A stretch of 64,000 bases of DNA, from the NCBI GenBank assembly GCA_010909165.1, contig VJWM01000068.1:1302001-1366000 (forward strand). Reading direction: 5' to 3'. The notes under the pieces are model-generated. The model did not search any database, was not told where the DNA came from, and was given only the letters and a program-made list of their open reading frames with translations. Within the stretch, counting starts at the first letter, position 1, and each line of letters starts with the position of its first letter. The DNA is from Anthoceros angustus (Eukaryota; Plantae; Anthocerotophyta). This document shows, piece by piece, positions 3,553 through 30,525 of this stretch. The translations under genes were made by a program, and so were the position numbers.

Positions 3553-3590
3553 CGGCTGTGGCTGCGGCTGCGGCTGCGGCTGCGGCTGCT
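3553..3590. repeat. (GCGGCT)n hexamer microsatellite just upstream of the dioxygenase ATG
   Basis: ctgcggctgtggctgcggctgcggctgcggctgcggctgc; a slightly shorter array is at ~61697-61737. Confidence 0.9.
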
Positions 3591-3857
3591 TCCAACAGGC
3601 AGATCGATGTTCCCCTAGGGCGAATCCAAGATGTGACAACGTCCTCGAACTGCACAGGAGACGGCGTGAGCTATATATATACACATCTTGTATCGTCACG
3701 GCGAGCACGCGCGAGTCGTGGGCCTTGAGACGCAACACACGTCTCCATGGCGTGTGGTTCACGATATGTACTTTGCAAATGGCTTGCCACGTGCTTGCTG
3801 CTGTTGCTTTCTCACCGCACACGACAAGCTCTCTGCGAAGCGCCAGAATATCAAATA

Positions 3858-4371: not shown

Positions 4372-4596
4372 TACTACCGCGCCTTTGAGAGCCTCGCGAA
4401 CCCGCCTTTCGATTTTTCTAACTAAAACACCAAACACCGACCCGTGGTCTTTATCACCCGTCATGTTTTGGTATTAATATTTCGTTTAAAAATAATTCAC
4501 GAGGATATAATCTCCTCATTGCCTATTTTACTTTTGGTTGTATAGTTTGTTGCTTCTTCCATTCCACTCCATTGGCCTTGTGTCTTTGTTATGTAG

Positions 4597-4810
4597 GTTT
4601 TGGGTGTCTTTACCTATTCAAAGTTTTGGGTGTCTTTACCTATCCAAAGTTTTTGGGTGTCTTTACCTATCCAAAGTTTTTGGGTGTCTTTATCTATCCA
4701 AAGTTTTTGGGTGTCTTTACCTATCCAAAGTTTTTGGGTGTCTTTACCTATCCAAAGTTTTTGGGTGTCTTTACCTATCCAAAGTTTTTGGGTGTCTTCA
4801 TCATCCAAGT
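4597..4810. repeat. 27-bp minisatellite, ~7-8 units (gtttttgggtgtctttacctatccaaa)
   Basis: Head-to-tail units with no spacers. It explains the QKLWIGKDT-type repetitive ORFs. The same array, including the variant tatctat unit, is at ~62777-62990. Confidence 0.95.
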
Positions 4811-5469
4811 TGCCTTTCTCCTAACAACTGTACATCGTCCAACATGACTTGCGAGGAAACTCATGGATCGTGGCAATTCTAGCATAGTATACTATGGATC
4901 GTGGCAAATCTACCATGGCTTCTTTCCGAGAAGGCTGGCTAGTACGACGACTTGTGAATCTCAATATTTATTATTCATTATATTACATAACATCCGTGAC
5001 CAAGATGCACTCGAGATGGAGCACGGCAAGGCGATGTGGGCCATAGACACTGTGACCACGAGGTTCGCAATGAAGAGCTCAACATGGAATGGAATCGAGT
5101 GTCTTCTAATAGACCAGCCCAATAATTAGGAATCTACGCGATTAACCGGATAGAATGCGATGCCACTTACGTCGAACTTATGTCCAGAGTTTAACTTAAG
5201 ATGATCCAACCGTGTGCCAAGGACCATTCGGTTTGATTTGAACTGTCCAATTTGAAAATCCACTTGAACTAGTTAGCAAATTGTGACTTCTCATGGGCTA
5301 AGGACAATTCAGTTTTGATTTCAACAATCTACTTGAACTGCCTAACAAATTGTGACTTCTCGGCGAGACACAGAAAATGGTAAAAATACGATAAATAAAA
5401 ACAAAAGTAATTGACCAGGTAGTATAATCGAAGCAGGCAAGCAGGCTGGTGAATGTCCATGCTTGGGTA

Positions 5470-5535
5470 GACAGTGCCACGATCAGGCCCGTGGACAGTG
5501 CCACGGTGGCACTGTCAGGCTCGTGGACAGTGCCA
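5470..5535. repeat. Cluster of gacagtgccac motifs including a perfect 11-bp inverted repeat
   Basis: gacagtgccac at 5470 and 5494, its reverse complement at 5506-5516 (1-nt loop), and gacagtgcca at 5526. Confidence 0.85.
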
Positions 5536-6399
5536 TGGTCTGCAACCGCCGGTAAGCCAAAAACGGGCCTAAATCGCTTGCCCCGGTTTGCAGGCGTCAG
5601 GAGGACCGGAATCTAAATGGGACAAACGAATTCGGAGAGCGCAGTGAAGGGACGAGTTGCGGCAAGAAAGAAGACTGCACATAAGGTGTGCCAGCGATTC
5701 TTTACGGAGTAACTGCGAACTGCACAGTCAGCTTTTGATTGAATGACTATAGTACAGTTTTCCGGATAGCAGAGTTCATGAATGGTCGGATCACCCACTC
5801 ATTTTGAGCCTCCGCCTGATCCATCGTTCCTCGCTTGATCTGCACCGAGACCGGAGTTATGCGTGCGTGAGCCAACAGGGCATTTGAGTTGAGAGCATGA
5901 CTTCAAGCACTAGCACAGAATTTTGAAACACAGACCTGGTACAGCCGGAGATCGAAGCGGGTCCAACTTCCTTCAACTCTTGAAGCTTCCCAGCAGACTT
6001 TTCAAAAACATGGTGCCTGAAAAAACAGCGTCACAGAAGCCAAAATAAATTCACACACCACCGTGCACAACACAGGATGCTCACACACTCTGCGTTTGCT
6101 GAAATCGGTCTCACCTGAAAGAGATGTCATCAGATCGGTTGACGAACGAAATCGTTCTCTTGGAATCTGGCCTCGGTGCTGGGAAAAGATGCTTGAGAAT
6201 TGTTGCTGTCCTCTGCCCTAGCTGCAAACATTTCCACCACAAATTAGATGCACAACCGTATCACCAACGTGGTACAAAAGCAGTGGCAAACAACCCCACT
6301 CAAGACACCAGGCCCAGAATCTAACGCAAAGCAGCATATCTACCTTGGTACTAAAGTTCTCAAGTATAAGATGGGGATAAGCTTCTGAAACTGTGCCCA

Positions 6400-8300
6400 G
6401 AGATTCAGTTTTACTCCTCTCATGCCTTGTCACCTGCACAAGATCGGATAACGCTAAGTATGTGACGGTTGCCGGAATTGCATGCTTCATCTCACACCTG
6501 CAAGGCTCCGCGTGACCAACCAAAAGAAAATTTGCTACTCACCACATTCATGAGGCCAAAATAAGCTGTTGGGCCATAAGGCAAGTGACAGATAACAAGG
6601 CCATCAGGTTTCCCTCGATGCTCATGAACCATCACAATATCAGTGAAGTCATTTGCTCTGGATGCCTTGACAATTTCTGAGATGACCTAAAACACGACCA
6701 AGATCAGCACGGTTGATGACAGACACCATCAATCGGGGACGAGACAGACGAGAAGGATGGAGAAGTTTGCAACTTACCTGACCTCCACGGTTTATCCTTT
6801 GTGCATTTGGCAACACTATCTTGAGCTCCTACAGCGCACAAGAACGCCACCGTTGGAAACCTGGCACAGGACTTTTTACCACATCCAGGCAGAGAAACAA
6901 ACTTTCACTCGGATACACACCTTCACGAATTGGGTGAGCGTACTGCTGGGATCCCTAGACGTGGTGAGCAGGATTTTGGGATCCTTGTCACCTGCGTGCG
7001 CATACTCGTCGTCGATGCCGGTCGCCATCTCTAGGAAATTCACGAAAATACAAACTCTCAGGTTCGCAGGCTAGTGAGCCCTAGTAGTGGATTCAGAGTT
7101 TCAGACCTGCCTCGCAGCTAAAGCTAGGTTTGCAACTCAATCGTCAATCGATTCTATGCTGAGTGGAATTTTATTGAAATAGGTATAGAAAGGTGGGTGA
7201 TCCCATCCACCTCAAAACCTTAAATCCCTTCAAGGAAGAAGGACTCTCAGTACACCTGTATGGTAGGTAGGAACACTAGGTGTACATATATAGTCTTTGA
7301 GCTTGGCATAATCTAAATTCCGAGGGTGAATGACTAGAAATGTGCATGGCTAACATACATTCGTAGAATTAGGATGGAGGGAGAAGTTGAAGCCAACTTC
7401 GTTCACGAATTGTTGAAGCCAAGAGAATATTCAATGTGGTATAAGGCTGGAGCCACATAACAAACACAGCGCAAAGTGCAGATGCCATATCACTGCTGTC
7501 TAAGAGTGTAGTGTTTTGCACAGGTATTCAGAAGACCAGCAAAAGTAATTGGTCAGCCAGGGTGAGGCCCTCCTGTTCCATTTATCCATTCAGGGCATTC
7601 TATGTCAATCCTCCTTCACTCCTGACCAACGGGCATCTTTTTTCACAATTTTGAGTGTGAAGCTGCCTGCCCTACTGCAGGGCACCACACTTTTGTGGCC
7701 AAACTGTGATAAACCCTGCAGGCATCTTCAGTCCCCACATTTTGCATACATGCCCACCAGGCAAGTGCCAACAACAAGTTACGAGGAATGCCATGGTTCA
7801 ACCACAACCCTGGATGGCAGCTACCAACACGCAGCATCCGCCTTCGCACCTGTCTTACACATCTCAATGCCACAGTTTTATGGCCTCATGATTAGGTGTA
7901 CCATGCTTAGCATATGCAGGAGAAGAAGAAGAAGAATTTTATTTAAGTCCACTAAGGACGGATTTCCATCATGGAACACACATGTGCAGAGATTATGGAG
8001 AACCACATGGAGGAATATGGTATCATCGCTGAAAAGGAAGGAATGGTCAAGCCGTGGAAACGCAAGCACTGCAGGTTCACATTTCTCTTTAACTGGCTTG
8101 CTGTAAAACCATTGAATTTGGAGGATCATTGAATGGCGGATCTTTGCAGAAGATGAAGGTTGCATAGTTATGATTTATAGCCGAAGGAGTGGACAGGCTA
8201 GCGGAACATGACTGTACTGGCACAATATGTGCATCTGCAAATCAAGAGATGGTTCCCATTTGCAACTGACTCGTACCAAGTTTGACAGTGAGCACACTCA
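6400..8300 (-). pseudogene. Degenerate PLS-class PPR gene, copy A
   Basis: Fragments in shifting frames: AYAKHG..HEAIKL, MYAKCG/EDACRVYHSLATK, MEQEGLTL, REGVYPSESLFLC. Many stops and frameshifts; boundaries approximate. Confidence 0.65.
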
Positions 8301-8496
8301 AATGCTGCTAAAGCATACACTCCTTGTCCAGGCTCGGTGCCCGCTGATTGCCTGCGGCTGAATTCCAGCCCTTCCAGTCCAGCCCCAGCCCTTCCAGCCT
8401 TACTGATTGGACGAGAGATGTCCCGTCTTCCATCAATCCTGTTATCCCTCTCAAGCCATCAGGGCCATTCCTACATGTATCATTCATGGCACAAGC

Positions 8497-10694
8497 CTAA
8501 ACTTCGGGCATCCCTACCGTCACAGAAGAGAATGACGAGCTTTGCAACCGGGTCATCTCCAGTGACTCGGCGGGCATTATAGTTTGCTGGGGACACCAAT
8601 GGTTGTCTGCTGTGTAAACCGCAACTGGCTTACATCTTGGGAGCGAAGGTAGTTCAACATCTTGGTTCAAGATCTGCTGCACGCGCCTAGTAGAAGGCCT
8701 CAAGCTGGGATCCGGGTGGGTGCACATCAAGCCGACATGTAGCACACAGGTTAGGTCCCTAGGATCAAACTTTCCCGCCAGTGCTGGATCCGCCACACCC
8801 AGAAGGTTGCCAGCTTCTAGCATCTGCCACACCCAGTCCAGTAGCTGGACTCCTGGTTGGGGATTAGGGGTCTCCTGCCGCTGGCCACCTCCAGCAACAA
8901 AACCCCAAAGCTGAAAATATCCGACTTGGCCGTGGCCTGCCCAGATAGGGCAAGCTCCGGCGGCATGTAGCCAAAGGTCCCAGCTAAGAGTGTGAGCGCG
9001 AGGCCCGTGGCGAAGGTCTCCTCCACCAGGCGGGACAAGCCGAAGTCTCCCAGCCGGGCTTCCATGTTGGAATCCAGAAGCACGTTGGCCGGCTTGATGT
9101 CCCTGTGCACAATGCACTTCCTCCACTCCGTATGGATGTAGACCAAAGCCGTTGCAATCCCTCTGACAATGTGAAATCTGTCCGTCCACGATAGCACCTG
9201 CTGACTGGAGTAGAGGTGTTGATCCAGGCTGAGGTTAGGCATGTAGTCGTACACGAGCAGGAGCTCGTCCTGCTCCTGGCACCAGCCATGGAGATGTACC
9301 AGGTTCCTGTGCCTGAGCTGCCCCAAGATCTTGAGCTCCGCACGGAACTCCTTGGATCCCTGCCTTGAATCCTGCGCGATCCTTTTGATGGCTAACTCGA
9401 CATCTGAGTCTCCGATCCGCATTACCCCCCGGTACACAGTCCCGAACCCGCCTTTCCCGAGGATCTGTGATTTGCTGAACCCTAGAGTCGCCTTCTTCAG
9501 CTCCTGGTAGGTGAATGTGCGAGTCCAGTGGGTGATATCTGCATCCTCCACGGAAGAAGTGCCTGACGGGTCGGAGCTCCTTGCTGTGGACGATGTTGAT
9601 GCTTTGTCCGTGATGCGAGCACTGAGGGATTCCGGGCCATCCTTCCCGGAAGATCCCACATCTGCAACAAAAGAAGCAGCCAAGGCCGCAGCCAAGAGCA
9701 ACTACCAGCAAAGCTGCTCCAGTTGCAACCCTGCAACCAGGCCAGTGCTGCTCTTCTTGACTGCCTGAGGCTCAGGCTCAGGCGCAGCGGCTGGAGGTGG
9801 GGGGTGGGGGTGGGGTGAGGTGCGGGTGGGTGCAGGTGGGGGTGGTTGTGGCAGGCCACTGGTGGAGAAGGTCCAGTCGTAGATGTAGGTGTTCTGGCTG
9901 TTGTCGCCTGTGCTAGCCGTGAATCCGACATAGGAATACTCTTGAACGATGCTGGAGACGTTCAAGCTGCTGTAATTAAGCACAAGAGAAGCACCAGATT
10001 TCTCATATCCGTTTTTGGGATAGTCTGACATGTACACCCACAGCTTTTGCGCGTCCGCAGAATAGTCGATCCAAACTGAAAAGCTAGGACCATCTGTCCC
10101 TGATGAGTCGTCCCTGAGCGTAATGTCGTAATCCGACAGGTCATTCGCCTTGACAGAAGCAACGCTGTTGATGTCCAGCCCCACGTGGTTGGGATTGTTC
10201 GGGGGATCCCATGGAGTATTCCAAAAGTCGTCGAACTCCACGGCTAAGACTTGAAAACTGGAATTCCTGGCAGTGTCATTCACGGAGTTGTAACGGAGAC
10301 CGAGACCACCACCCGCGCTGTTAGGGGGCACCTCGGAGCTAGGAGCGATGATAAAGGTCATCCCATCACCCCCGGAAGTTGCTCGTGGAACTTTCATGGC
10401 GAAGGTGAAGGAGACGTTGAAGGAAGCTTCCCCACCAGTGGCCGCATCATAGAACTGCACAGGCTCGCCATACACTGCTCTGGACACCAAGTCCGGGCCT
10501 GTACTCAGCGTGGTGCTATTCGCATCGAGGTGCAAAATGCTTGACTCCAGTTTGCAGTTGCCGTCCAGCCGCATCCCACCGGTTGATGAATTTGTGAAGT
10601 TGCGAGAGAAGGAAAAGTACACATTCCCGGAGCTTACCTTCTGCGCACGGCAGCTGAACATCACGGCCAGCAGAGGAAGCACAAGGGCGCACAT
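8497..10694 (-). CDS. L-type (legume) lectin receptor-like kinase, intronless, copy A (several frameshifts)
   Basis: Signal peptide MCALVLPLLAV, legume lectin motifs (DGMTFII, LAVEFD, NHVGLDINS, YVGFTASTG), a TM helix, and kinase motifs GKGGFG, AIK, HRDIKPAN, DFG, GTFGYMPPE. Confidence 0.93.
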
Positions 10695-12261
10695 GCTTTA
10701 CAGCTGGGGCAACATCTCGTCTTTGTCTAGCAGGCCAGGGCCTGATACCTCCCAAGCTGCTCGCAAGTTGTGCTCAGTGAAAGCGTTCGGGATCGGACAT
10801 GGAGCGAGAAAGGAAGGAAGGAAGGAGGCAAACGAAGGCCCCCCGCGGCGAGGTCCGATCCCTGTCCCCAAACCTTGGGGTTCGATGCAACCCTGGGCAT
10901 GCACCCGTCGCCTAAGGCTAACGCAAACTTAATGAGCCCTGCCATTCGTACCGCCCGTGTGGCCACGCACCCCGATGCAAAGCTGAGAGGCATGAGGCGG
11001 CATGCCTCTCTTTCTTTCCGGCGTCTCCTTCTCCGGCAACGGCCGTCCGTCGTCGCTCCTGTCAATGGCTCCCTCCGCCCTTCTCTCAACGGCTCCCGTC
11101 CGCGCTTCTCTCAACGCCGTCCGTCCGCACCTGGTCACCCGTATGTGGTCTCAACCTGTTCACCCATCCCTGTTCTCGTTCCTAATGCGCGAAAACGAAC
11201 GTTCAAGTATCTATAACCCGCTTCTAATGCGGTTCAGTTCAGAGGAAGCTTGACGGGTACGATCGAGCAAGCGAGCGGCAGTTTCTCCAATATCGTGATG
11301 TCAGCAAAATGGAACATTTGCCTCACACTCAAGTGCAGACACTGGAGCCCGGCATCCTCAGCAGTGAATGTGTGAAGCGCGCTTACATTCTTGCTGACCG
11401 TCGTGTAGGTGATTTTATTGCAGGTGAGAAAGCAAATGCTTGCTTTCCCACCTGCTTCATCAAGCTGCGTCATTGGGGGAAGACCGTGGAATCAAAGCAG
11501 CATGTCAAAGACACACAAGGAAGCGAGGTGACAATCTACCATTGTCAGTACGGGCCTGATGACTGTCGTGGGGAGGCTGCTATGACGGCTTCTTTCCTTG
11601 CTCCAAATGTGAGCCCAAGACAGGGGCGGGGCGGGCAGTAGACGTCCAACGATGAGTAAGAAACGTGGATGCCTCTTCCAATTTGTGTTTTGGATGGACG
11701 TCAACACACACTTAGTTTTCTATCCTGAGAATCTGCTGTTTCAAGCATGGCTCCAACCAGTTTTGTGCTCGGTCACACCGTTCATGTTGGAGATAATGGT
11801 TGCACGGGGGCATAAACTCTATCATAACTATGGATGCCACCTTCGGATTGAATAAGTGGCATTTCCAGCTGGTCAGTTTGTTGGTGTTCGATAACTTCAT
11901 GAACGGGATTCCAGTGGCTTGCACCACATTACTGCAGGTCGGTCCTGGTGGACGCTGCCCACCACGCTGACGCGACCTTCGGTGATCCTCATTCCCAGCC
12001 ACTCGCTTCCCGATGACGTCTTCAGCTTCAGCCCCACGCTTGACGTGCGTCCGCGCCGCGTCCGGTATCCCTGACAACATCGTGTTTCCAGCAAGCACTG
12101 CCTGGCGCCAGTCAAATGGCAGTGAAATCAGTAAAAGATGACATTCTATACACCAGTTCAGTTGTGTGTCGACCAAAGCCGGGACCCTCTGGCACCAATT
12201 CTGTACGGTCCGCTCGCGAACTTCCAAAACGGTGACCGGAGTCGTGTTGTTCCTTCATCCG

Positions 12262-12563
12262 CTTCAGGGCTTCAGGGCTTCAGGGCTTCAGGGCCTGGGC
12301 TTGAGGCTTCAGGCCTGTGGCTTGAGCAGGCTTGAGGCCTGAAGTGGCAGGCTGTGGCCTTGAGGCTTGAGGCAGGCAGGCTGTGAGGCAGGCCTGTGGC
12401 TTGGCAGGCTTGAGGCTTGAGGCTGTGGCAGGCCTGTGGCTTGAGGCCTGCAGGCTTGAGGCAGGCCCAGGTGGCCTTGAGGCCTGTGAGGCTGTGGCCC
12501 AGGGGCCCAGGCTGTGGCCTGTGGCAGGCTTGAGGCCTGTGGCCTTGGCCTTGAGGCTTGAGG
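12262..12563. repeat. Degenerate GC-rich simple repeat (cttcaggg / ggcttga / ggcctgt units)
   Basis: About 300 bp of low-complexity sequence. The paralogous position (~56600-56620) has only ~2 cttcaggg units. Confidence 0.85.
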
Positions 12564-15500
12564 CACTTCCCTTTAATCTTGCGCGCTCTTCATACCAAGT
12601 TCTCACATGAGAGATGTGGGCTGCGGCGTGAGAAAGGCTGAAATGGTGGTGTTCGAAGGTGCGTAGAGAGGAGCCGTTTTGGGAGGATTGCGTCATTCAG
12701 TCCAGCGAGTTTTGGGAGGATTGCGTCATTCAGTCTGAAGATGGCCGATGTCATACTGTTGCTGTGAACTGAACAGACCAGGCTGATGAGAGATTGATAC
12801 TTGACTGTTGGCATCCCACCTGACATAAGCCATGTGATTTGGATGCAGATGTGCATGTGATGTGATATGTATATTGCCCATGGATGGTATGCACATGGTA
12901 TGTATGCATGAGAGATGGTTGAACATATCTAGATAGATGATGTGTCATGGTACATACATAGGTTAGCAAATCTATATAGAAAATACCTAAAAATCATAAA
13001 CCAAGGAAAAGGGCGAGTAGGTTGTTAGTGGCCATATGTATTATTTATCCATAGGCCAAGAAGAAGTAGGATTATAGTAGACTCAAGTGCCTACCATTGG
13101 TACAAGGAGGCACGTCATCGAGAGTTCTTGGGGTTTGGCCTATATATGCCTACCTAGCCATGGATTCTTGGATTGTAGATGTTTGTCGAAAGGAAAGGCG
13201 CCATACTTACTCCCTCGGCTTGTCTCATTTCTCTCTTGTGACCTTTGGGAACCGCATTGTCAAGTGGGAGCCTCAGGCAACCAACTTGATTTCACCACAT
13301 CTACAATCCCATCTGTTGCTTGGAGAATTGAGTCGGTTGCATTGGAGGATATAGTGGCGCACTGGAGACCGGAAGAGGCGGAAATCGATCATCTTCCAGG
13401 AGAGACTACGATCCAAGGCGGCCGAGCAGGCTCCACGGATAAGGCGGGACGATGGATAGGAATTCTACCATCGATTTCACGCCGTTGTAGAATCGACCAT
13501 TCGAGTTGGCTAGGACTCACTGACAGTCCACCGCATATGTGTGGGAGCGTCTCTGGATAGAAAAGCACTGCTCTTTTTTTAGCTAGTTGGGTAGTTGAGC
13601 TAGGATTGCCGTTTGACAACATTCCTCATGTCAAGCATAGGAATTCGTGATGGTATTTTTGAGTCATTTGGACTAACGAGGACACTGCTCCGTCCTCGTC
13701 TAGAAAGGGGACAAGGTCCACGGATCACCTTTCAAAAGACCACAGACAACGCCCATCACAAGATCTCGGTTTGAGGCGGGCGAGCCGATTCAAATGGAGC
13801 TAGAGAACACCGCAAAATGAGTTTTCAGGAAAACATGGGAGTATGTCACTTGCGGATTTTGAAGAGAAGTTCAGGGAATGGCGGAAAACAAAGATGAAGT
13901 ACAAGGACTAGTTCACTTAGAGGAATGGCCTCATGAAGATGTCGATCTCGTGGTGAGGCGTTGATGTACTACGAGGCGAGAAGAAGGACATCCGTGTTGG
14001 CGGAGAAGCGAGCAATAAACCTCAGAGGGAGTCACGGTGGCAAGCCACTCCTCCCGTCAAGGAGGCGAGCTAGAGCATTTGGTTGATCTCATGTTTGAAA
14101 GATTGAAGGACATGTTTCCCATATCGTGGAGAAGATTCGAGTTTGGGTTTAGCTTCAAGTCAATGAGGCCTGAGGCGTCATACATCAAAGATCTTGGTGG
14201 AGGACACGGATGTGAAGACCATGCGGGAGCTGAAATTTTCATGGCTGCGATGCCGGCCAGACAGTGAAGGAAGGTAATGGATGCTCTTCATGGTGCTCAT
14301 GGAGAAAAGTATGGTTTGGTAGCCTACAAGATTGCGGAGAAGGTGCTAAAGGGATCTTTGTCGATCAAGCATACTGAGGATCCAATTTGATCGGAGCAGC
14401 ACTTCTTATGGCTGGACAAGGAGGATCCAGATTCAGCATAAGGGTCGGCGAGAGCGATTTCCCGTGGTCAGCATCACGAGAGGAGGAGGTGAACAAGCCG
14501 GTCACTATCAAATATGGCGGTCTGGTGGTGCACATAAGTCATTTGAATGTGACTTGACTGGAGGCCGAAGCAAGGAGGTTTAAGGCTTGTGGTCGATGGG
14601 GCCCACATAGAAGTCGCATGTTGGGAGGCTCATCAGGCTCAAGCCCAAGGCGGGCGGTGAAAGGAGAAGGGCAAAGGCCCTAGTCGCAAGGCTCTTCTTG
14701 CATGAGTTGAAGAGATGCGAGCGGATGGCTAACATGGCGGCGAGTCGGACCACGCATTCTCTTCTCGACTCGGATGAAGAGGTGTATGGCATGGCGATTC
14801 GAAGAAGAAGAAGGTCTTGACCTCGGAGAAGGGGTTCACTACAAGGACACGTCGAGCGAGGCAGAGCAAAATGCACAAGTTTAGGCAAGTTGATGATGGT
14901 ACTTGTGCGGTGCTTCTAACCGGAGGTGGATGTGGAAGCACATTGGAGAAGGCCATGGAAGTTCACATGGTCAATTCTTTGGAGCTTGGACTCAAGAGTT
15001 CACATTTCAAAAGATCATGAGAGAATGGATCGGGAAAGAGATGGAAGTCGATTCGCTTGATGTACTGCGAGGAGACCATCTAAAGCACGAGCGTCGAGGT
15101 AAAGGAGGTGTTGCCATGATTGACAAGCAGATTACCTTTGATGGCTTTGCACGGTCAATGTCTTTGGTGGATCTTGGCAGATCCGGTCTTGTTGGGAGCT
15201 CGTGCGGCTCTCTCAATGTATGGCGCAAGGCTGGTACTAAGCGATAGCATCACTACTTGCGGTACCAAGGAAATGGTGATGGGGATGACCGACCGATCAA
15301 GATCGAGTTGAAGCAAGCCTGAGAGGATGCAACCACAATGGAGTACGTGCTTGGTGACTGTACATATCTTATGATGTGTTGTTGTGGCGGATGCTACACA
15401 TGGCCATGGGAGTTGATCATATGAAGAAGCCTTCTATCGACCATATGGAAGCAAGGGATTTTCGCGGTGCGACTATTCCTCAACATGAGCAAAAGTGGTA

Positions 15501-16878
15501 GAAAGAAGGCGGTGAAGGATGCCCGGCAAGCCACGGCGAGATGGCCCGGAACGAGATGGCTTCGGTGCTCAAATTGAGCACGAGATGTGGGAGGCAGGAT
15601 TGTCCTCGGGAGCAAGAAACCAGCGGAAGGAAGTTGAAGATTGCGCTCACGAGCACCTTGAGGAGGCAAGGGTTCGAGAGAATCGGCGGAAGGAGAATCG
15701 CCCGTGGAATCTCATAACACATGTCACAGAGATCCATGCTCAAGCCGCCAAGGCGGAGGAAGGCAAATGATGGTAGTCGATGGAGAGCAAGCTCGGTATT
15801 CACTGTTAGAATGTGCTCGGGGAATCGGCTGGATTGGGCGGTGCTTCAATGTGGCATCAAGGTTTGCGGCTACACCTATGTGGAAAAGGCGAGAAGGCTA
15901 GAGTCGTGGCAGTAATTCTCGGGTTGTGCAAGCTATTTCCATCTGCTAAGAGAAGGCGTGAGAGGTTGTCGAGGCGAGGCTACCCACGGATCAAGCTTGT
16001 GGGAAAAGCACAAGCTCCGTCGATGGACATGATCATCGAGGATGGGAATGTAACCTTCTCGATGTGGGGAAGAGGAAAAAGGTGTTTCCCTTCACGAGGT
16101 CGAGGTTGTGAGGAGGTTCAACATGAATCCCGGATCTTTGGTATCTTGGAAAAGCGTATGTGGAGCGTTGGACAAGCGTCCATCAGCATGTATGAGGAGG
16201 TTCGATCATGGTTCGACAATGAGTTGGTTATTGATCTTTGTGTGGCTCTTATGCACAGATTCGCGATTATTGGACCAATGTTGCGGGACTTGAGACGAGG
16301 CAAACGAACACTCATCGGTTCCACCACGGAAGGCTGATGACGTTCTGGAAGGTGCTCACAAAGTCGAAGATGGACAAACTTTTTATCCGATGAAAAGGAG
16401 TTGGTGAAGCTAGGAGGGCATGGCCGACTTTGGTAAGCATACAATCTTATGCATTCGAGAGGAGGAGATGGCATGATCCTAGACTTGAAGGGAGGAGCTA
16501 GGAGGCTCAATGTTGAGGAGCAGACAAGCCATGGGGTTTGCCAAGAAGTCGCAAACCATGGGTGTGAGTGAGGCGTCAGATGATTCTTGGACGGGCATTT
16601 GACTGTCACATTTAAGATGGTTAGTGAGCATTGGATTGGCATTTCTTGGCGGTGGTGAGGGAAGAAAGAAATGCAGTAGCGAAGATGGAAAGAGAGGCAG
16701 ATGAAGAGGAAGGAACCCGAGACACGTTATGTTTTTGTGGAATTTGAACCAAGAGTGTCACCAAGGAGGTTCACATCTGGAAGATTGATGAGGACATCAG
16801 TCCAGAGGACAAGCAAAGGATCATCGACATGCTCGAGAAGAACATAGGTGCTTTTGCATTCAGTTGGAGTGAGCTTGG

Positions 16879-19800: not shown

Positions 19801-20037
19801 GCATATATAGACACTTTCTTATTTCTAAATTACCAAAACCCAGGACTCTATTTCCAACCTACCTATCCAGGGGTGAAAACCTAAGGTCAAAAATTATTAT
19901 CCCAAGGGCCAGGACCATTCTCGTATAAAAGACCTTGCAGGCGATTCTCACAAACACTTTGCTATACAAACACTCCCAAAACAAAAAAAATCGTTCATCA
20001 GACACTTGGAGAGGGTTAGTGTATGTGGTCTTTCACA
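16879..20037 (-). mobile_element. 3.16-kb solo LTR (or LTR-bounded remnant) inserted in the gypsy pol
   Basis: TG...CA termini with a 5-bp TSD CTTGG (16874-16878 and 20038-20042). Both ends are homologous, in reverse orientation, to the ends of the solo LTR at 42877-44674. Confidence 0.85.
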
Positions 20038-21324
20038 CTTGGTAGGATGATAAGATCAAGTTCAAGATTGTTGCCACCACGAGCCTATCTTCAAGAGAAG
20101 GCATAGGTTGAGTCCAGCAGAGTGGGAGATTGTGGACAAGCATTGCCAGGAGCTGTTTGAAGCAGGATTGATTGAAATCAGTGAGTATCTTTTGCTGGCC
20201 GTCCAGCGAAGGGGCGAAAATGGTGAGTGGAAGGACAGAAGAATGTGTGGGGACTATCGATCTGATGGAGCGGTACCCCATGCCTACTCCAGATGAGATC
20301 TTTGATGCAATTGGTAAGGCAAAGTACTTTACCACTTTGGATTTCGGCAGTTTCAACGGATCGTGATTGAAAGAAACGAATAAGTGCAAAACGGCTTTGT
20401 GGGGAAAGGACCAACTCTAGGAATGGAGACTATGCCCTTTGGGCTGAAGAATGCTTCCATATACTTCGGAGAATTGCAGTTTGGGCTGCAAGATTTGCCG
20501 TTGTGCGTTGTTACATTGATGACATCCGGTTTCAGACACCATCGAGGAACACATGGATCATCCGGAGACTTCTCTGCAAAAAAAATCCGTCGAAAGCTCA
20601 TCCAAAAAAAACATATAATGTTCTTTCAAAATTGAATAATGAGCGGTTCGAGCGATTGCCGTAGGTTCCTCTTTCTTGTCCCTTACCAATTCGCTCTAAA
20701 GTAAGCCAGCGGAAGCTTGTTGGACCGCACTATGCAAGACTCAATAAAGCCTAGTTTACAAGATACATTGTTTTATTTAATGGACCTATAGAAAATACTT
20801 TCTTGGTTTTGGCCACCATCGGTAAATTTGTAAGAGAAAACCTAAACATTTATTAAAAGCGTTAGACCGTTCAAGTCATTACCCTAAACCCATAGTAGGA
20901 TGCCGGCATACCAGTGGCCTTGCACATAAAACTCATGGTCAAAACGTGCTTGATGCTAGGTTTACGGGGCATTACATGTGTCTGGTTGGGATCAACTGGG
21001 ATTACGCTACACACATGCGGATACATCGAGGGGACGGTAATGTTTCTAAGACTATCATCGGGTCTTGAAAGTGTCTCGCCTTCATTGCCTCTGCATCATC
21101 TTCCTCTATCCCATCAACCACGTCTGAGGCCATCTTGTGTCTAGTGTTTGTTGACCCTCATCCAAAGGTCTCAGTATGTTCTTTCATTCTCCACAGCGAC
21201 AAGAGGCACTGTCAGCCTTTCCAATTTCTTTTCACTCCATAAACCTCCTTGGCCCAGGCGAGATATTCCTCGGTGCGGCTCATGGGTGAGCTCCTCTTAC
21301 GCATCAGCAATACTTCATATCCAT

Positions 21325-21978
21325 GCACTCGCTGCGGAATGAACTCACACACACCTCTTGTCGGCCTCAATAGAAATACAATGGCGGCGGACAACAAAGC
21401 GACCATCAAAGATGTCCCACTCACGAACAAGCATCCACTATCCGATCGCCTTCTTTGGAGAATGTCTTGATGAGCTTCATCATTAACCCCAAAGGCCTTT
21501 GGTAGGGGCAGACGACAAGTTTGTCGAGTGAATGATATAACAATTTCTTCACCACGATATCGTGGCCAATCACCGATCTTCCATTGTTAAATGTGCCTCA
21601 TAGCATTCGGTAACATATGCCGTTGCAAGTCACTTGTCTTCCTCAAACCCCATCCTCATCACATACTCAACAAGATGTCAGACCCACCTTTGTCATTGTT
21701 TACGTTTGTCTTGTCCGAACGAAATGATCCCACCACTTCCGCATAGCCTCTCTCACCAAATGGGCATCTTCAACACCATGCATGATTATCATCCGATCTT
21801 GATCACATTATTAAATCATGGAAGAGTGCAAAACATTTCCACTTGCCAAATATCAAAGCGTCCGTCCTTGGGCCTTTCTCGAAACCAGGTACATCCATCA
21901 CAAACAAAGAGTACCTTCTCTTCCTCACGTACCTCGCATGTCGAGGATATCTCGTCCATGTACGATGCACTTTTTGCA
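21325..21978 (-). pseudogene. Beta-class DNA amino-methyltransferase domain (N6-adenine/N4-cytosine, N6_N4_Mtase-like), frameshifted, inside the CACTA element
   Basis: Hand translation across frameshifts: IVHG(R)DILDM..RRYSLFVMDVP(G) [motif IV-like, DVP at 21895-21887] ... VEYVM ... open stretch GTFNNGRSVIGHDIVVKKLLYHSLDKLVVCPYQRPLGLMMKLIKTFSKEGDRIVDACS / SGTSLMVALLS / RHCISIEADKR / CEFIPQRV. This matches the HPTQKP..L..LI...S..GD.VLDPF.GSGTT..AA...GR..IGIE pattern in beta motif order. Confidence 0.82.
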
Positions 21979-22939
21979 CTAATCTCGAATTGGGAGTGTT
22001 TGATTAGCATTAATTAATCTTTGCTCATCTCTAAGTAAGTCCATGTGTTAATTAATCTTTATAATTAATTTTGATTGTTAAATTAATATTATTATGTTAA
22101 TTAAGCATTGAATATTAATTACATATTGCATGAGAGGAAACCAATAATATCTTTAACAGCCGGCCTTCATAAATACGGAGCATGAGATAGCCATACATTC
22201 GCCAAGAAAGGCGGGCGGCATATCGCATGCGGGTCCCTTGAGGCCGTGCCAGCAGTAGCCCTTGGCGGGCGTCGGATCACGCGCCGCAATCGGGCGTTGT
22301 GAGGAGGAGATGCGGGCATGGGAGCGGGTCCCAAAGGGTGCGCCACGGGCGGCTCCCAGGTTTCACCCTTCAAACCACATCATTAAATCACTTCAAATTA
22401 TAGCAATTACCTGCCCTCAAGTGGACGTGAATTGAAGGAGTCCATCCTCGTCTTGGATTAGTTGTCTGCTCATCCTCAGCCTTGATATTCACTTAAATAA
22501 TTGTTGAAATTCCCTTAACACCTCGATATCCTTTCTGCATGAGAGGAAACCAATTATTCATTCGCCCTTCGCCGACCAGGAAGATGCCGGCCAGCCTTCG
22601 CTTTGGAATGAGAAAATAGGCATCTCCGCCCTCTGTCCTCATGTCCAGCCCGCATCTGCTTTCTTCTGCTCAAAGACGGCCACCCATGTTCTTTCCCATC
22701 ATTCCTTGAAGATCTTGTCACTTTGGCGAGACTTTTGTTTCGGCTTCAAGATAAGAGTTACATCTTTGTATTTGATCATCCTAACCTCATCGTTGTGCCT
22801 TAAGTTCCGGTCATTCGTATGCCGTCCAGTCGGTACATGCACTCTCCGCCTTATCTAACTTGCTCAATAAATCAGAAGCTTCACGGCTTCTGTTGCAGTT
22901 TGCTCATCTCTTGTAAAGTCGGTAAGAAGCCTCTATCCA

Positions 22940-25425
22940 ATGATGAGCTACGTCTGGCTTTGACCAGTTGGAATACATACATGGCGGGTTAGATTAGGAT
23001 ATGTGGGGTATATGCTGTCAACAGACTATCCGGTACCATCTTCGCTCCGTGTGCTCTTGCCTTTGGTACTCGAGGCGGAGTGAGTTCCTGCGTCACCGTG
23101 CGGGATTAATTGGTGGTAGAGGATGTGTTTAGGCTCGGTGACTCCGCCACAGCTTGATGGAGTGCGGAGGGGCGGACTTGAGCTCGGGAGGTGCTCGCGG
23201 GTGAATTCTCGGGTCGAGACTAACAGGCTCTTGGAGCGGAGGGCTGGAGTTCTGGCTGCGAAGTCCTTCTCTGAGCGTAGGCGGTGGGAGGGATTAGGGG
23301 GCGCTTGGGGTGTCTGCCCGGAAGCCATCCTTGGAGGCTCTGGAGCAGGCTGTGGAGTTGCAGTGTGAAGCCACTTCTCTGAGCGTGGCGGTGAGGAGGA
23401 TTAGGCGCTTGGGGACTGGGGCGGAAGCCATCCTTGGAGGCTGGGGCATGTGAGGTTCTGTTCAAAGCTACTTCTCCATGAGCGTGGGTAGGAAGGGCAA
23501 AAGCGGCTGGTGTGAATACATCGTGTTGGTGTTGTGACTACCGGTGGTGATGGACAGAGAGGAGGTCGCGTTGCGGCGTGTGTTGGGGTGGAGTTGTGGC
23601 GGGCCAGTTGAGGGGCGCTAGTCGTGGTGAAGCGGAGGCAGCGTCGCTAAACTGTTCGGTGTCCGACAGGCGGGGTTTGTGGGAAGGTCGGTGGGCGTGG
23701 TCCAAACGAGTTGTGGAGGCCACACTTAGGGTTGTGGCGGGACCCAACATGATGAAGTCCGTTCGGCGGTGGCGTCTCGAGCGAATAAGCGAGACCATTC
23801 CCAGGAGCGGACTCCTTCCTACAACGACACGGGATTGTCTTGGTGCCGTCCGCGCCACATTTTGCGCCGTTCTTGGGGAATAGTGTTGTGGTGCTGAGTT
23901 AGTAGATATGAGTAGGCAGTGCGCTGCGGTGTGGATGGGTGTAATGGTCGGGCGGTTGTGGAGTATATAGAAGTGAGAATATGCAGGGGCCGGGACGTGT
24001 GCGAATCTAGCGGGAGGCCCTCAAAGGGAGAAAGAAGATGGGCACAGGCGGGAGGGCGGCACATCAACCTCGGAGGAGGCGACTCATCCTCAGCGGAGGA
24101 TGAATCTTGGTAAAAAGAATCCCAATGTTGGGACTTGTGGCGCGGAGGTAGTAAAAGGCGAGAAGAGTCAGGCGAGGAGGCGGGTGTTGCGGTGGGGCCA
24201 TATGATGAAAGAGTATGTGGAGTGCCATGTCACTCTGGCGGTTGCTTTTTGTTTTGGTCGTTCTTGTTAAGAGGGATAGGAGGAGTTAGCCAATAAGGCC
24301 GTTTGGCGGTTATAAGTGCAATCCTAACCACAGGTCCGTTGGGCGGCGAGCAGTGAATGGTGGGTCAGGTCGACGGGTTCCGGTCGGGGTCGTGAGTGTG
24401 GGTCGAGTCGTTAGTCCGGTCAGTCCCGTGGTTGAGGTCGGTCAAGCCAGTGTGGTCAGGTCAGGTCAAAGTTAGGTGTGGCACGCGGCGTAGTGGTTGG
24501 CATAGTTTGGAGCGGATCTCTTGGAAAGGGCGTGCTGGTGGAAGAAGTCGGGTGCAATGATGAGCTACGTCCTGGCGGTTACTCGACCCGTTAGGTACAT
24601 ACATAGGCGGGTTAGATTAGGATATGTGGGGTATATAGGAAGGCTGGCGTCCAAGGCGGCAGACTATCCGGGTACCATCTTGGCTCCGTGTGCTCTTGCC
24701 TTTCGTGCTCGAGGGCCAGTGAGTTCTGCGTCTGCGAGGATTAATTGGTGGTAGAGGATGTGTTTAGCTCGGTGTGCTCCAACACGCTTGATGGGTGCGG
24801 GCAGGGGCGGACTGAGCTCGGGAGGTGCTGGGTGAATTCTCGGGTGAGACTAACCTTGGAGGCTGGAGCGGATGGAGTTGCATGAAGTCACTTCTCTGCG
24901 AGCGTGGGCGGTCGGAGATTAGGGCGCTTGGGGTGTCTCGCGGAAGCCATCCTTGGAGGCTCTTTGGAGCATTGTGGAGTTGCAGCTGTGAAATCTGAGC
25001 ATGAAGCGGTCGGAGGGATTGGGAGGCGCTTGGGGAAACTGTGGCGGAAGCCATCCTTGAGGCTCTTGGAGCAATGTGGGGTTGCAGTGCAAAGCTACTT
25101 CTCCGAGCGTAGCGGAAGCAAAAGGCGGTGTGAATACATCGTGTTGGTGTTGTGACCTGTGGTGATGGACAAGAGGAGGAGTCGGCGTTAGCGTGTGTGT
25201 TGGGGTGGGTTGTGGGGAGTTGAACTAGGCGCTGAAATGCCCGGAGGCAGCGTAAACTTCGGTGTCGGAGAAAGTGAGGGTTTGTGGGAAGGTCCGTGGG
25301 CTCAAATGTCCGACGAGTTGTGGAGGCCACACACTTGGGGTTGTAGCCGACCCAACATGATGAAGTCGTTGAGGTGGGGCTGCTTTCAGCAATAAGCGAT
25401 ATTCCCTTGAGCGACTCCTTCGACA
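22940..25425 (+). repeat. Imperfect direct repeat pair (~22940-23830 and ~24558-25425) with internal ~110-bp subrepeats
   Basis: Both start tgatgagctacgtc..tacatacat..ggcgggttagattaggatatgtggggtatat. The subrepeat gcgcttgggg...cggaagccatccttggaggct occurs twice per unit. Confidence 0.85.
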
Positions 25426-26559
25426 GGTTGTGCGGCACTCCGATGGTTGTTTCGCCTCAAGACTCCCATAGGGCGCGGCATGCGATGGCGCCCTCCCAAA
25501 CGCATCTGGCCTTGCCTCAAGCGGTAGGTCCCAGTGGGGCCGGAGGCGCCCCTCTCAAACCACATCAAAATCGCTTCCTGGAGCCCTCAAACCCGTTTGA
25601 ATCTATGACTCGGTGGAGATACACTCTCACCATCTCGAAAGAGGCCTGTGGCCATTGCACACAGGTCGGCCAGCTCAACCTCGCGATGAATCACCGATTG
25701 AGGCGGTATGGAGAAGGATGGGTAATGAGAGATGCTCTTTCCACCCCAAAGTGAAACATTTGTAGCGAGCGATGTGTGGATTCGGTGATTCAAAAAGGCA
25801 TGTGGGGTTCCATTGTCCAAAAGCGATAGCGGTAGTAAGATGGACTTTGGAAACCATCTTTGCAACAAGCTCGTGTGCAAACTACGTGCAAGGCAAACTT
25901 GCAAGAGCATGATATCGTTATCGAGGATGGGGAGGCGGAGCAAGAAGCGTTTTTTCAACTAGTGGATGTGGACATCGCGAAACCTAAGGAGAAGGTCATC
26001 ACACATATCATGGGGCTGGGCGCATTCGTGTTGTTTGCAAGCGGAGAGTTCTTGCATAGGTTCCAGCGGTATGAGGAGTTGAAGGCGGTATTGTGCAATG
26101 CTCCATGGGGCGGAGCAGGAATCCTCGGCAACCCTGTCGCATGCAGGGAGGCTGGCATGGATGGATTCCACTTTTCAATTCATGTCGGAAAGGCGCGAGC
26201 GTCGATGTTTTCACATGCGATACATTTTCCAAGTTGGAAATATGGGCCCGATCTGCGACGGGATATGGCACGGTCCTCCATGAAGTTCGTCTCCTGTATG
26301 TTCTTAACCCTGGAGAAACAACTTTCCGAAGGTCCGGATACCAAAATCAAACAGGTTTTCTACTTGTTCTCTGCGCGAGGCCTCAAGCGCACTATTCGCA
26401 ACACATCGGCGGATCAAGGTTTGTTCCTTTAATCACAAAGGCGAATCAAGGGAAATTCGAATCTTGTTCGTTGACATGTTGCCGGCATGGTAGGGACCGT
26501 GTTTATCCAATCGGTTTATGTGTGTCATGCCACACAGTTGATAACATGTGGTAGCACGC

Positions 26560-27170
26560 CGTGCTTATGGCGGTGGCGTCATGGCGCTGTCGTGCATGAT
26601 GTTTGGAGGAAGGCGCGGCATGCGGTGCCTATGTAACCATAGCTCGTTCTCCGGCATGCGCGCAATATGGTTACAGGCGCCCGCGCCATAGATATGGTTA
26701 CATAGCGGCATGCTATGCTCTCGGTTACATCGGTGCGGCATCTGCATATACTCCTGCAGGTGCGGGCATGCGGCGCCTATGTAGTGCGGAGGCCGGCGCG
26801 CCTGTATAGCTCAGGTGCGGGCGGCATGCGCCATGCGCAGGCGGAGGCGGCATGCCTGCCTATGTCATACTGCGTGCGGGCGCATGGCGCTGTTCTTAGT
26901 GCGGGCGGCATGCGCATGCGTGCTGCTCCTATTACATACGCGACGGCATGGCGCCTATGTTCATACCAGTTTTTGAGCACCGTCATGACCCACCTATGTC
27001 GGTTATGCGGTGGCATGCGGCTATGTCCATACATCGGTTTATGCAGCGCATGACCCGACCTATGCTTGAATATATGTCGGCCGCATGGCGCCTATGGGCA
27101 TATATTGTTCCCCATGGGTATAGTGCATGATGCGCAATACATGGTCGCCATACATCCGGTGCCTTCACGC
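26560..27170. repeat. Highly degenerate minisatellite, core gcggcatg(g)cgcctatgt
   Basis: Recurring ggcatggcgcctatg / ggcatgcg motifs at irregular ~25-35 bp spacing. Confidence 0.7.
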
Positions 27171-30100
27171 CTTAGTCCTTGCATGCGGTGGGTTGTGCTC
27201 ACGTATGCTGGTGTGCCCGTACTCATGTAGGAGTTTTGGTCAAATGTGGTGGAGGTCGTTGTGCAATACTCCTTGTTTTGACATGTGCATATTTTCGGTT
27301 GTGAGGTATATGAAGGGCACTGGCGTCTCATCGACTACGTCTGAGCAGGACAAAGGAGCATCGCTCTAAAAGTTATGCTCAACCTCACAAGTACATGCTT
27401 ACGGCTATCGACGGTATGGACCAAGAAGAAAATGCCCCATTTTATTCGATACCCAAAAGATTTAGCGGATAGTTCACTTATTAATGTTCATGTAGTTGTA
27501 TGGTGCATAATTACACTTTCAAGGCGAGGCGTATTTGCATTATGCCAATTTGGAATGACGAATCTAACTATCAACATAATTCAAGATGTCATATTTTCAT
27601 ATGAAGGGGTGCTTCCAAAGTGCTTTATCTCCGACTTGACAATACATGCGGGAGAACAAAAATCAGTTGTTATTCGCATACCTAAATATGCTCGTTGACC
27701 TTCAAGTGTTTGTGAAAGTCAAGGTTGGTTTCCTTGGTTGGTCACACACATGATCGTAGATCAAATGTTTTCTTGTTTCTCAAGCTTCGAGACACAAAGA
27801 GGCTTTACAATAGATACCTGGCGGACATTCGTGACATTCACTCCAAAAGCGGAGTGAAGATTATAGCGAGTAGCGGACTTTCGTTCATATGTATGCCGAT
27901 CGGAAAGGAGCAAGAGGATATGCATACAAGGCGGTGAAGCTGAACAACCTTTCCTTCCATCGGTTCAAAATCACACGGGAAGAGCAGCAGGCCGTAGCCA
28001 CGCATTCTTGTTATTCCACTTCACAGGAATCGGAAGATGGTTTAGAATTTTTGAACTTCGTTCCCACCATTGCAGTTGGTCGGCTCCGCTTATGGCTTTG
28101 AAAGCGAAAGACAAAAAGGCGGGATGGTGATTGTCGCCATCGAAGGTGTGAAGCACTTGAAGAATGGGTTATTGAACTTGAGGACATACATACATAGGCG
28201 AGAGAGAGTGTGGTGGAGGTTGTTTGGATTGATCAAGAGGAATCGCCCTTATTGTGGAGAACAACATAGCTCTTGTGCTAAAAGCGACCATGGAGATGGT
28301 ACAATAGGCGGCGAGGCGAACTTGCCTCCGCTCCAAGTCCTGAAGAGGTTGTCCTCGAGCATTACTCGAGAGGTACCCCAACGCGATATGTATTTGGGGC
28401 ATATCGAATATTGGTGCATGTGACAACAAATTGAAAAATGAATGGGGATATCAAGGAGATACGGAAAGGAATGTTCATCGCTACTCCATGTGCGAGAGCG
28501 CACATGAGGCTTTTGGATTGGGAAGGTGGGCGTGGACTTTAATTGTGAGAAGCCTTAGCTTATGGTCCAGCATGAGCAAACACGATGCGTTTGAAGGAAA
28601 TATGTTGAAGAATTTTTGTTCGGGGACGCATTAGCAGGACATGGGAAGCGGTGGGAAAAGAGGATTACCAAAGAACATCCAGTTGTTTGTTGACAAGACT
28701 ATAATCCTCTATTATGGATTCAACTTGAATGGAAGGAAACACTTGTATGCTTGAGATAAAAGGCCATTCAAAAACTAAATCACCGCCCTTTTACGCAACC
28801 CGGGAGAGGACGATAGCGACAGGAAGCGATGACGGAGGTCCTATATTGGATGAAGGAATTGAGTCGAGGGTGAAATTATGCGCGGATGTTTGAAAGATGC
28901 ATAGAACATGCCCTTGCAAAATAAGCATGTTGAGTAGTAGATGTTCACAATTATATAGTTCTCTATGGGACTCACCCTATTAGGTGGAGCAGGCGCCTAC
29001 TTTATTCTTGCCGCTCATTAATACGATGTTATCAATTCAAACCGTGCACAAGCGGACACGAAGCGAAAGTGTCACCCATCTGCTCTTTGTCGTCTTGTCC
29101 CAATGCACGAGGTTAATTAATATGCCCATGAACTCGGCGGTAAAATGCGATTGTTGCTTCTTGCTATCGCTAACGCGAGATGGGAATGGATAGAAGTTCA
29201 TCTATGTACAGTGCGGGGGTGGTGGGGCATGCCCCGCATGTGCCTTGTATCTGACCAGCCACAATAAATTAGGAAAAACAACCGGCTGCCTTGATGTTGC
29301 ATTGGCGTGTGCGAGAATACAACCAAGGCCGTACACCTCATCCACGTTACAAAGCTGTTTAAGCCTCGCTCAACACTTCATGCATATCCATATATTTCCC
29401 AAACCACTCACCATGCGTGTAAAAGTTGCATATTACAAAGCATAGCGAGGCCCTCACACATGGACTTAAATATGGGCATGTTTTGCGAGCAAAATTGCAT
29501 TGATCTTCCAACAAATCCCTTTGTTTGGCCACCCCATGTCATGAACTCATGTTCAAGTACATGTGCCACCCTTTTTCCCTCTTACTTTCAAACAAATAGT
29601 CCAAGAAGGGTTTGAGTGCCCATGTTGCCGCCGGTTATTTGTATAAAGTGGGAAAACGCCGCTTCCTGTTTATTACGACGGAAAGAACATTATAGTGTTA
29701 AAAGTGCAAGTTTGCGTTCAAGCGGATTGAGTATCTTGGACATGAAATTGTGCCAGGAGGAATCATGCCGCAGTTGGCTAAGGTGCAGGCCGTGATGCAG
29801 ATGCCTAGGCCCAAGGATGTGGCAGCTCTTAGAGCATTTCTAGGGCTAGTGAATTACTACAAGAGATTTATGAAGGACCTCAGTTCTACATGCAAGCTAT
29901 CGCACGAGGTAAATTCCTGTAAGCACTTACTCGACAAACAACCAAGCAAAACAAATCTAATACATGCATATAGGTGCAAACCAATAACAGCAGGAAGTAG
30001 GCTGCACCGTAGCACAAACATACTCCCCATAAACAACACGCAAATTCCTCACACTCTCGAGTCATAGCTTTGGCCTCACCCTTAACAAGCGCATGCGTTG

Positions 30101-30525
30101 TATATCAGAGACATTGTGATCTAAGCATGGAGAATTACTATCTTGCATCGGCATATTCCTAAGATATCCTATTGGCATTGATATGTCGAAAATATCCTAA
30201 GAATACACTATATAATATGCGAGCATTACTTGAGCTTATCCACTTAGCTATTGCTAACCATCTTTAATTAACACTAATCAATGCTTAATTAACATAAGCA
30301 TTAGATTAATTAATTAATTACTTACTTAAAGATAAGTAATTAGATTAATTAATCAACTAAACCCAAGTGCATAGATTAGTATCACGGCATGACGGCGGTA
30401 TCATGGCAGGTAAATTCATATAAGCACTTCGACCAACAACCAAGCAAAACATCTAATATGTAAATAATCCACGATAATGTGAGACTCCAAGTCAAAACAT
30501 TATCATTAGTAGACTACATCGCACC

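Follow-up and report, generated by a model that had tools for sequence, protein, structure and literature searches.

Does a gene for a DNA methyltransferase of prokaryotic type really reside in a transposon of a land plant and, if it does, to what kind of transposon does it belong? The question is raised by a window of 64,000 nucleotides from Anthoceros angustus (contig VJWM01000068.1, positions 1,302,001 to 1,366,000), to the letters of which all positions below refer. An earlier note on this window had described a beta-class N6-adenine/N4-cytosine amino-methyltransferase (MTase) gene carried by a CACTA transposon. Our analysis bears out an MTase-like gene that lies inside a plant DNA transposon bounded by terminal inverted repeats (TIRs), opposite in direction to the transposase, but it corrects the classification of the element from CACTA to Sola1. 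The segment 20610-29699 is very probably a dead 9.09-kb Sola1-type transposon with an MTase-like accessory gene, inserted in the reverse transcriptase (RT) gene of a Ty3/gypsy element. The coordinates of its parts are collected in Table 1.

A three-frame reading of 22050-21150 recovered the MTase blocks quoted in the earlier note on the minus strand and in the order given there, though spread over three frames: IVHG.DILDM, LFVMDVPG, PYQRP..LMMKLIKTFSKEGDRIVDACS, SGTS and RHCISIEAD. Searched singly against Pfam, the frames of this remnant yielded nothing beyond one sub-threshold match, that of the best uninterrupted piece (58 residues, 21424-21597) to PF01555 (N6_N4_Mtase), with an E-value of 0.031 and 14.7 bits, the cut-off being 26.7 bits. 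A phmmer search of the Protein Data Bank (PDB) with the same piece drew in no methyltransferase among the solved structures. When it was used as a query against 1.84 billion representative proteins, three matches were returned, P0001, P0002 and P0003, of which P0001 proved to be a low-complexity repeat protein and was discarded. The remaining two are intact relatives, respectively 54% (P0002, 185 residues) and 51% (P0003, 323 residues) identical to the window piece, and the PF01555 search that had been proposed as a check is passed clearly by both of them (5e-15 and 56.4 bits; 4e-13 and 50.1 bits). Two further members, P0004 (446 residues) and P0006 (229 residues), were obtained by word-based searches. 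Every intact relative is located on Logan contigs, which derive from the two runs SRR33208241 and SRR33208242. In tblastn searches of the window, the relatives recognized the block spanning motifs X and I with E-values ranging from 9e-12 to 4e-10.

To align the remnant across its frame changes we used a frameshift-aware local aligner written for this analysis (BLOSUM62, frameshift penalty of -12). Residues 57-95 of P0003 were placed on the N part of the remnant with a score of 63 (30 +/- 4.6 for shuffled sequences), residues 129-146 on the middle part with a score of 40 (26.6 +/- 3.4 shuffled), and residues 236-318 on the C half with a score of 160 and identity at 38 of 81 positions. As the three parts are collinear with P0003, the remnant matches the whole gene and not a single motif; in the same alignment motif IV precedes motifs X, I and II, as the beta class requires. 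Frameshifts were detected near 21944, 21422, 21387 and 21347, and the frame changes again between the three parts. A stop codon occupies 21979-21981, four more stops lie in frame between 21742 and 21597, and the motif I loop is broken by a stop and the frameshift at about 21422. With such frameshifts, stops and parts in different frames the remnant is a pseudogene, and the suspicion that this copy may be dead was well placed. These relationships confirm the presence in the window of a prokaryote-type beta-class amino-MTase-like gene in the form of a broken copy; neither a second MTase-like locus nor a second copy of the element was found within the 64 kb. The AT-rich block upstream of the remnant, which had been regarded as a possible intron, does exist.

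The limits of the element are given by the retroelement that it interrupts. The Ty3/gypsy RT was identified by eye from its canonical motifs, its short pieces obtaining no score in Pfam searches, and the inverted ends of the element sit exactly at both of its break points. This coincidence shows the inverted repeat to be real. The 17-nt CACTA repeat that had been claimed for both ends, CACTATAATGTTCTTTC, is read only at the right one, where it was found once on the minus strand (29681-29697). At the left end the sequence CA-TATAATGTTCTTTC provides an exact inverted match of 14 nt and, counted from AAC, the ends match at 18 of 19 positions with a single indel, the left end being without one C. 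The insertion measures 9,090 bp, and its removal together with one AAAA allows the RT to be read in one continuous frame across the junction. This read-through served only to place the insertion and to size the duplication, the retroelement being frameshifted elsewhere. The frame is restored with a target-site duplication (TSD) of 4 bp, and also with one of 1 or 7 bp.

The transposase remnants lie on the plus strand, opposite to the MTase remnant and like it between the TIRs, as had been claimed; however, they are not the TnpD remnants for which they had been taken, as no TnpD was found. We aligned to the window a 56-residue stretch from the core of the transposase of Sola1-1_Ec32, a Sola1 element of Ectocarpus, in which acidic blocks two and three are contained. 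Nowhere in the window did it align better than at 27629-27782 on the plus strand, with a score of 82 as against 38.8 +/- 2.9 in 40 shuffles searched over both strands of the element (z of about 15). This alignment, which covered that one stretch of the published transposase, includes three frameshifts and pairs LDNT..ENKN with VDNTVAENKN and VGHTH..VDQMFSCF with VGHTHIQIDQIFSCF. The block with the first Asp, IDGMDQ as against MDGANQ, is situated about 220 nt farther upstream, a distance that agrees with expectation, and was recognized by eye only. Likewise by eye, the block at 26022-26420 follows the pattern seen at the Sola1-1_Ec32 N-terminus. A motif set of another transposase family (YHFDFAQ / DNC.GQNKN) gave no fit and was dropped for the published Sola1 sequence. 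Between the two transposase parts lies the stretch 26420-27400, in which short units are imperfectly repeated (one of 14 nt at 26567-26598, for instance); it may represent an intron, an insertion or filler.

The same gene pair was encountered on L004, a 16-kb contig of another organism, where an MTase-like gene (plus strand, about 4578-6616) stands head-to-head with minus-strand open reading frames (ORFs). One of these, L004:251-733(-), aligned with the window block at 26022-26420 with a score of 97 as against 43-62 in shuffles, a representative pair being VRIPKSNRFSTC in the window and VKIPKSNRFSVC in L004. Given that the layout of L004 matches that of the window, with no similarity between the two genomes at the DNA level, the divergent pair of MTase-like gene and transposase is linked in two genomes. 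L004 also carries AACCACTAAAATGTTG about 790 bp past the stop of its MTase-like gene, where both strand and distance are those to be expected of the end of the element. The chance of encountering a 13-mer with two mismatches within 1 kb was estimated at about 0.01, and the string hints at a terminus of the same kind, the other end being off the contig. A homologue search with the L004 transposase ORF returned itself and one paralogue only, and in the ESM Atlas the transposase N-terminus found eukaryotic clusters, the other two queries giving noise. Farther along L004, 4-8 kb past the putative Sola1-like end, we noted a Ulp1-type protease gene (11918-12964, minus; Peptidase_C48, 6.6e-45) and a RecQ-like helicase fragment (15394-15961, plus), which could be host genes or the cargo of another element.

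This linkage bears on the possibility that the MTase-like fragment does not properly belong to the element and is instead a fragment of a host gene, or a piece gained horizontally, that was captured once or came to lie inside by chance. Such a capture would agree with the single readable copy in the window and with the other repeats nested in the element. It would also agree with the failure to find upstream of the remnant the N-terminal extension of about 230 residues that precedes the MTase domain in the relatives and is conserved across contigs L002, L003 and L004; no place in 20000-30500 gave the extension of L004 a score above that of shuffles. Yet the same gene family stands head-to-head with a homologous transposase start in an unrelated genome, the arrangement is that of the published Ectocarpus element (PMC12477816), and a DNA run of the species contains part of the MTase remnant in multiple copies. 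We therefore regard capture as improbable, and prefer to read the MTase-like sequence as the accessory gene of a Sola1 element.

It is the transposase core, the length of the TSD and the sequence of the ends that make the element a Sola1 and not a CACTA/EnSpm transposon. Sola elements make TSDs of 4 bp, according to the Ectocarpus study and, reportedly, to Bao et al. in 2009. The ends of the window element, AAC..GTT, resemble those of Sola1-1_Ec32, a 21.5-kb Ectocarpus element with AACCG..CGGTT termini, 282-bp TIRs and a 4-bp TSD biased to end in A, in which the accessory gene opposite the transposase encodes a protein of 1104 residues with ParB-like and N4C/N6A MTase domains (PMC12477816). 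Both elements thus have the Sola1 DDD core, a 4-bp A-biased TSD, AAC ends and an MTase-domain gene opposite the transposase; in contrast to the Ectocarpus element, that of the window is 9.1 kb long, has TIRs of 19 nt, is dead and contains no ParB-like part that we could detect. A CACTA/EnSpm (CMC) transposon with TnpD remnants would likewise be a cut-and-paste element with TIRs. The right end of the window element indeed has CACTA at positions 3-7 of the terminus, the putative end on L004 contains this string as well, and CMC-type (Plavaka) elements of red algae carry PF01555 accessory genes. However, the left end reads CATAT, and a CACTA-type TSD of 3 bp would leave AAA on one flank and TTA on the other with loss of the RT frame. 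Moreover, none of 30 ORF pieces from inside the element matched the CACTA transposase family of Pfam, or indeed any transposase, SET or ParB domain in that database, whereas the transposase remnants match the Sola1 core. A CACTA origin is consequently quite improbable.

Sequencing reads were compared with the Sola1 element over 20500-26450 (5,951 letters); a search for runs with the element itself had listed none, and those of the species were found via the neighbouring lectin-kinase gene. RNA-seq had been recommended by the earlier note as a check; in two RNA runs of the species, both small in size, no RNA contig fell on the MTase remnant or on the rest of this interval. Parts of it are covered at raised depth by DNA unitigs of the same species, some of them free of mismatches. 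The summed depth was about 100 over 21694-21892, within the MTase remnant; over 22888-25076 it amounted, with gaps, to about 12-155, and in most other covered bins to about 3-14. Depth and absence of RNA fit a silent multi-copy family, the depth not being a copy count. Two DNA unitigs, with about half the depth there, show one G more than the window after position 21823, in the MTase remnant, so that sister copies differ from the window copy by indels.

The same data weigh on the notion of a live host methyltransferase gene whose apparent frameshifts would be short introns. An AG/GTACGT-like sequence at 21930 and the ending in AG of the AT-rich block upstream are what such a gene might offer as splice signals. 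The frame changes, however, fall within conserved blocks a few bases apart, for instance between ..DACS and SGTS, a spacing far too short for introns. Stops in the aligned frames and the lack of RNA contigs on the remnant also speak against a gene in use, and we hold this explanation to be very improbable. Contamination by bacterial or viral DNA, or a chimeric assembly, to which only the phage and bacterial affinity of the nearest named domain relatives would point, is exceedingly improbable, in that the remnant is decayed and embedded between the halves of a plant retrotransposon, parts of it are matched exactly by unitigs from an independent DNA run of the species, the contigs of its closest relatives have eukaryote-type neighbours (the Ulp1 protease and RecQ), and viral contigs and metagenomes contain no close relative.

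The intact relatives of the accessory gene alter the meaning of its most conspicuous deviation. The aromatic residue that motif IV contributes in beta-class enzymes makes a stacking contact with the flipped base. The window copy, with D-V-P-G, and the four relatives alike lack the canonical form of this motif, (D/N/S)-P-P-(Y/F/W). The loss of the Tyr had been put down to damage to this copy, but all four intact relatives read L-D-L-P-R-G-L at the position, their D-L-P-R-G aligning with the DPPYG or DIPYG of ordinary enzymes, and the missing Tyr is hence not a mark of the decay of this copy. The argument that Asp at the first position leans toward N6-methyladenine (6mA) loses its footing for a similar reason, as it presupposes a catalytic site of the usual kind, which this one probably is not. 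The relatives and the ordinary enzymes have in common the upstream QGD, the (H/S)P.QKP of motif X, the GSGS(T) of motif I and the acidic motif II; in P0002, P0003 and P0004, the three that reach this region, motif I reads DGC(S/A)G(S/A)GS and motif II (A/S)VD(V/I)D. The half of the protein family that binds S-adenosylmethionine (AdoMet) looks as if it had been kept, with Arg in place of the aromatic residue of motif IV. Pairwise identity among the four relatives is only 39-56%, and conservation of Arg for Tyr across paralogues so divergent suggests selection for a role other than the canonical formation of 6mA or N4-methylcytosine (4mC). Methyltransferase catalysis is putative, for the family and for this copy alike. 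On contig L003 we also noted a third MTase-like paralogue (998-2219), consisting of three overlapping ORFs owing to frameshifts or short introns, with DLPRG at motif IV.

In profile comparisons, the nearest matches of the family were of phage or bacterial origin, phrog_67 at 1.7e-18 and phrog_498 at 2e-14 (residues 69-312). PDB profile matches, namely TTHA0409, DpnA, the rotifer N4CMT, M.RsrI, MboIIA and CcrM, cover the C-terminal 60-70 residues only. A scan of metagenome contigs with the family profile returned just two loci, 26% identical, and one of viral contigs returned none.

Several observations nevertheless count against reading the insertion as a Sola1 transposon with its own MTase-like gene. 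The transposase survives only as remnants, and about 1 kb between its parts (26420-27400) is GC-rich sequence that is unexplained. Because the TSD falls in a run of A, its length is deduced mainly from the reading frame. All intact relatives come from a single organism, by way of its two sequencing runs. No ParB-like domain was detected upstream of the MTase domain in the window, and no ParB signal was found in the N-terminal extension of the relatives with Pfam, PHROGs, a PDB profile or hhalign comparisons with the N-termini of phage ParB-MTase proteins; in view of this double absence, orthology of the accessory gene with that of Ectocarpus is no more than putative. Finally, AlphaFold returned a pLDDT (its per-residue confidence measure) of 39 for P0003 with a four-sequence alignment and of 38 for the N-terminal extension with two sequences; both models being unusable, the MTase fold is assigned from sequence profiles alone. 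The string HRLVDNKTLEY, conserved in the extension, bears by eye some resemblance to a degenerate ParB 'LVDG.HR' box.

Among known systems, the phage and bacterial beta-class MTases (PF01555; phrog_67, phrog_498; TTHA0409 with PDB entry 2zie, DpnA, M.RsrI, CcrM) present the same order of motifs, IV...X-I-II, and the QGD, D-x-P, (H/S)P.QKP and GSGS(T) blocks, and differ from the present family in the aromatic residue of motif IV and in lacking its eukaryotic N- and C-terminal extensions. MpDN4MT1a/b of Marchantia and the rotifer N4CMT, the latter among the PDB profile matches at 4e-5 (8s9m/8s9n), similarly constitute beta-class prokaryote-type MTase domains in eukaryotes. These, however, are host genes with an intact TSPPY and demonstrated activity, whereas the family considered here has D-L-P-R, is borne by transposons and has a putative activity only. 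A further system is that of the PAG2 accessory genes of red-algal Plavaka, Zisupton and Mutator elements, which combine PF01555 with SET (bioRxiv 10.1101/2025.02.11.637652). In these too the transposon has a PF01555 domain in its accessory gene, which is proposed to modify the chromatin of the element itself, but the transposons are of other superfamilies, and the SET domain of PAG2 was found neither in the window nor in the relatives. ParB-fused Dam-like enzymes of chlorophytes and chytrids have been discussed by Iyer et al. (PMC4738411).

Both genes of the window copy are pseudogenes and nothing points to a present function, and it is the living members of the family for which a mode of action can be proposed. 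These would have two divergently transcribed genes, one for a DDD transposase and one for the accessory protein. The transposase would cut at the AAC...GTT inverted ends and paste the element elsewhere, and an event of this kind, a cut-and-paste insertion into the RT gene of the Ty3/gypsy element, would have produced the 4-bp target duplication seen in the window. The accessory product is predicted to have the fold of a beta-class amino-methyltransferase of phage or bacterial type, keeping the SPYQKP of motif X, the GSGSG of motif I and the acidic motif II around a catalytic loop of the form D-L-P-R. It might bind AdoMet and DNA and, for the benefit of the element, act on the DNA or the chromatin of that element, whether by methyl transfer of an atypical kind or by binding without catalysis. 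More specifically, though here we are only tentative and think it rather less probable than otherwise, the protein could be, in place of an ordinary N6A/N4C methyltransferase, a conserved D-L-P-R variant that has kept its AdoMet pocket and either has acquired a new target or chemistry or has become an AdoMet-sensing DNA binder, in a land-plant branch of the transposon-borne MTases of algae without a recognisable ParB domain.

For algae, an amino-MTase-type gene paired with a Sola1 transposon has been described before, and it is from algae, of the brown, red and green lineages, that the published cases of amino-MTase cargo come; in the literature that we searched, we found none of a transposon-borne amino-MTase in a land plant. 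The interest that remains resides in the land-plant host and in the conserved D-L-P-R, and concerns the family and not the window copy. Transposons with DNA-modifying or DNA-binding accessory genes of their own are candidates for self-marking or for escape from silencing by the host, and such a role may be supposed here on the same inferential footing as in the algal papers.

Table 1. Features of the interrupted Ty3/gypsy element and of the inserted Sola1-type transposon (positions within the window)
Feature	Position	Strand	Remarks
Host Ty3/gypsy RT, left side, decayed	20200..20605	plus	..MPFGLKNA.., ..YIDDI.., ..NPSKAHPKK; three-frame reading
Left TSD copy, AAAA	20606..20609		
Left TIR, AACA-TATAATGTTCTTTC	20610..20627	plus	at RT break point
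MTase-like accessory pseudogene	21308..21993	minus	frameshift-aware alignment to P0003, tblastn, homologue search
MTase remnant, N part	21993-21878	minus	motif IV DVPG at 21884-21895
MTase remnant, middle part	21795-21742	minus	
MTase remnant, C half	21555-21308	minus	motifs X, I, II
AT-rich block	22000..22130		directly upstream of MTase remnant
GC-rich direct repeats of 0.88 kb (two)	22938-23818 and 24555-25421		78% alike, 737 bp apart; between the two genes of the element
Transposase, N-terminal block remnant	26022..26420	plus	aligned to L004:251-733(-)
Transposase, Sola1 DDD catalytic core remnant	27395..27800	plus	IDGMDQ at about 27407; LDNT..ENKN from 27629; VGHTH..VDQMFSCF 27737-27782
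Right TIR, AACACTATAATGTTCTTTC	29681..29699	minus	
Right TSD copy, AAAA	29700..29703		
Host Ty3/gypsy RT, right side	29704..30064	plus	continues CKFAFKRIEYLGHEIV...LRAFLGLVNYYKRF

Within the element, the two 0.88-kb direct repeats are of high copy in the DNA run of the species, with a summed word depth that amounts to about 12-155 along most of their length, with gaps in between, and one DNA contig (run X2) joins 23214 to 24846, which corresponds to a one-unit form of the repeats. The pair is probably a nested high-copy repeat; alternatively, it may be a small element resembling those with long terminal repeats.

Outside the element, the ends of the window constitute a large direct segmental duplication, in which 1-5792 corresponds to 58091-64000 (96.9%) and 6407-10905 to 51719-56259 (91%). 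It includes genes for L-type lectin receptor kinases (Lectin_legB and Pkinase, confirmed with Pfam), and with these duplicated genes the window therefore fits a land plant. Tandem duplications of two units each, the units being of about 0.3-0.9 kb and 84-91% alike, were noted at 43908-45753, 46706-48104, 50209-51098 and 39024-39630. AT blocks rich in TTAATTAA occur both in the transposon beside the MTase remnant (22048-22128) and in the gypsy element (30264-30353); they look like inverted copies of one another over 23 nt (96%), a likeness that is probably a coincidence of low-complexity sequence.

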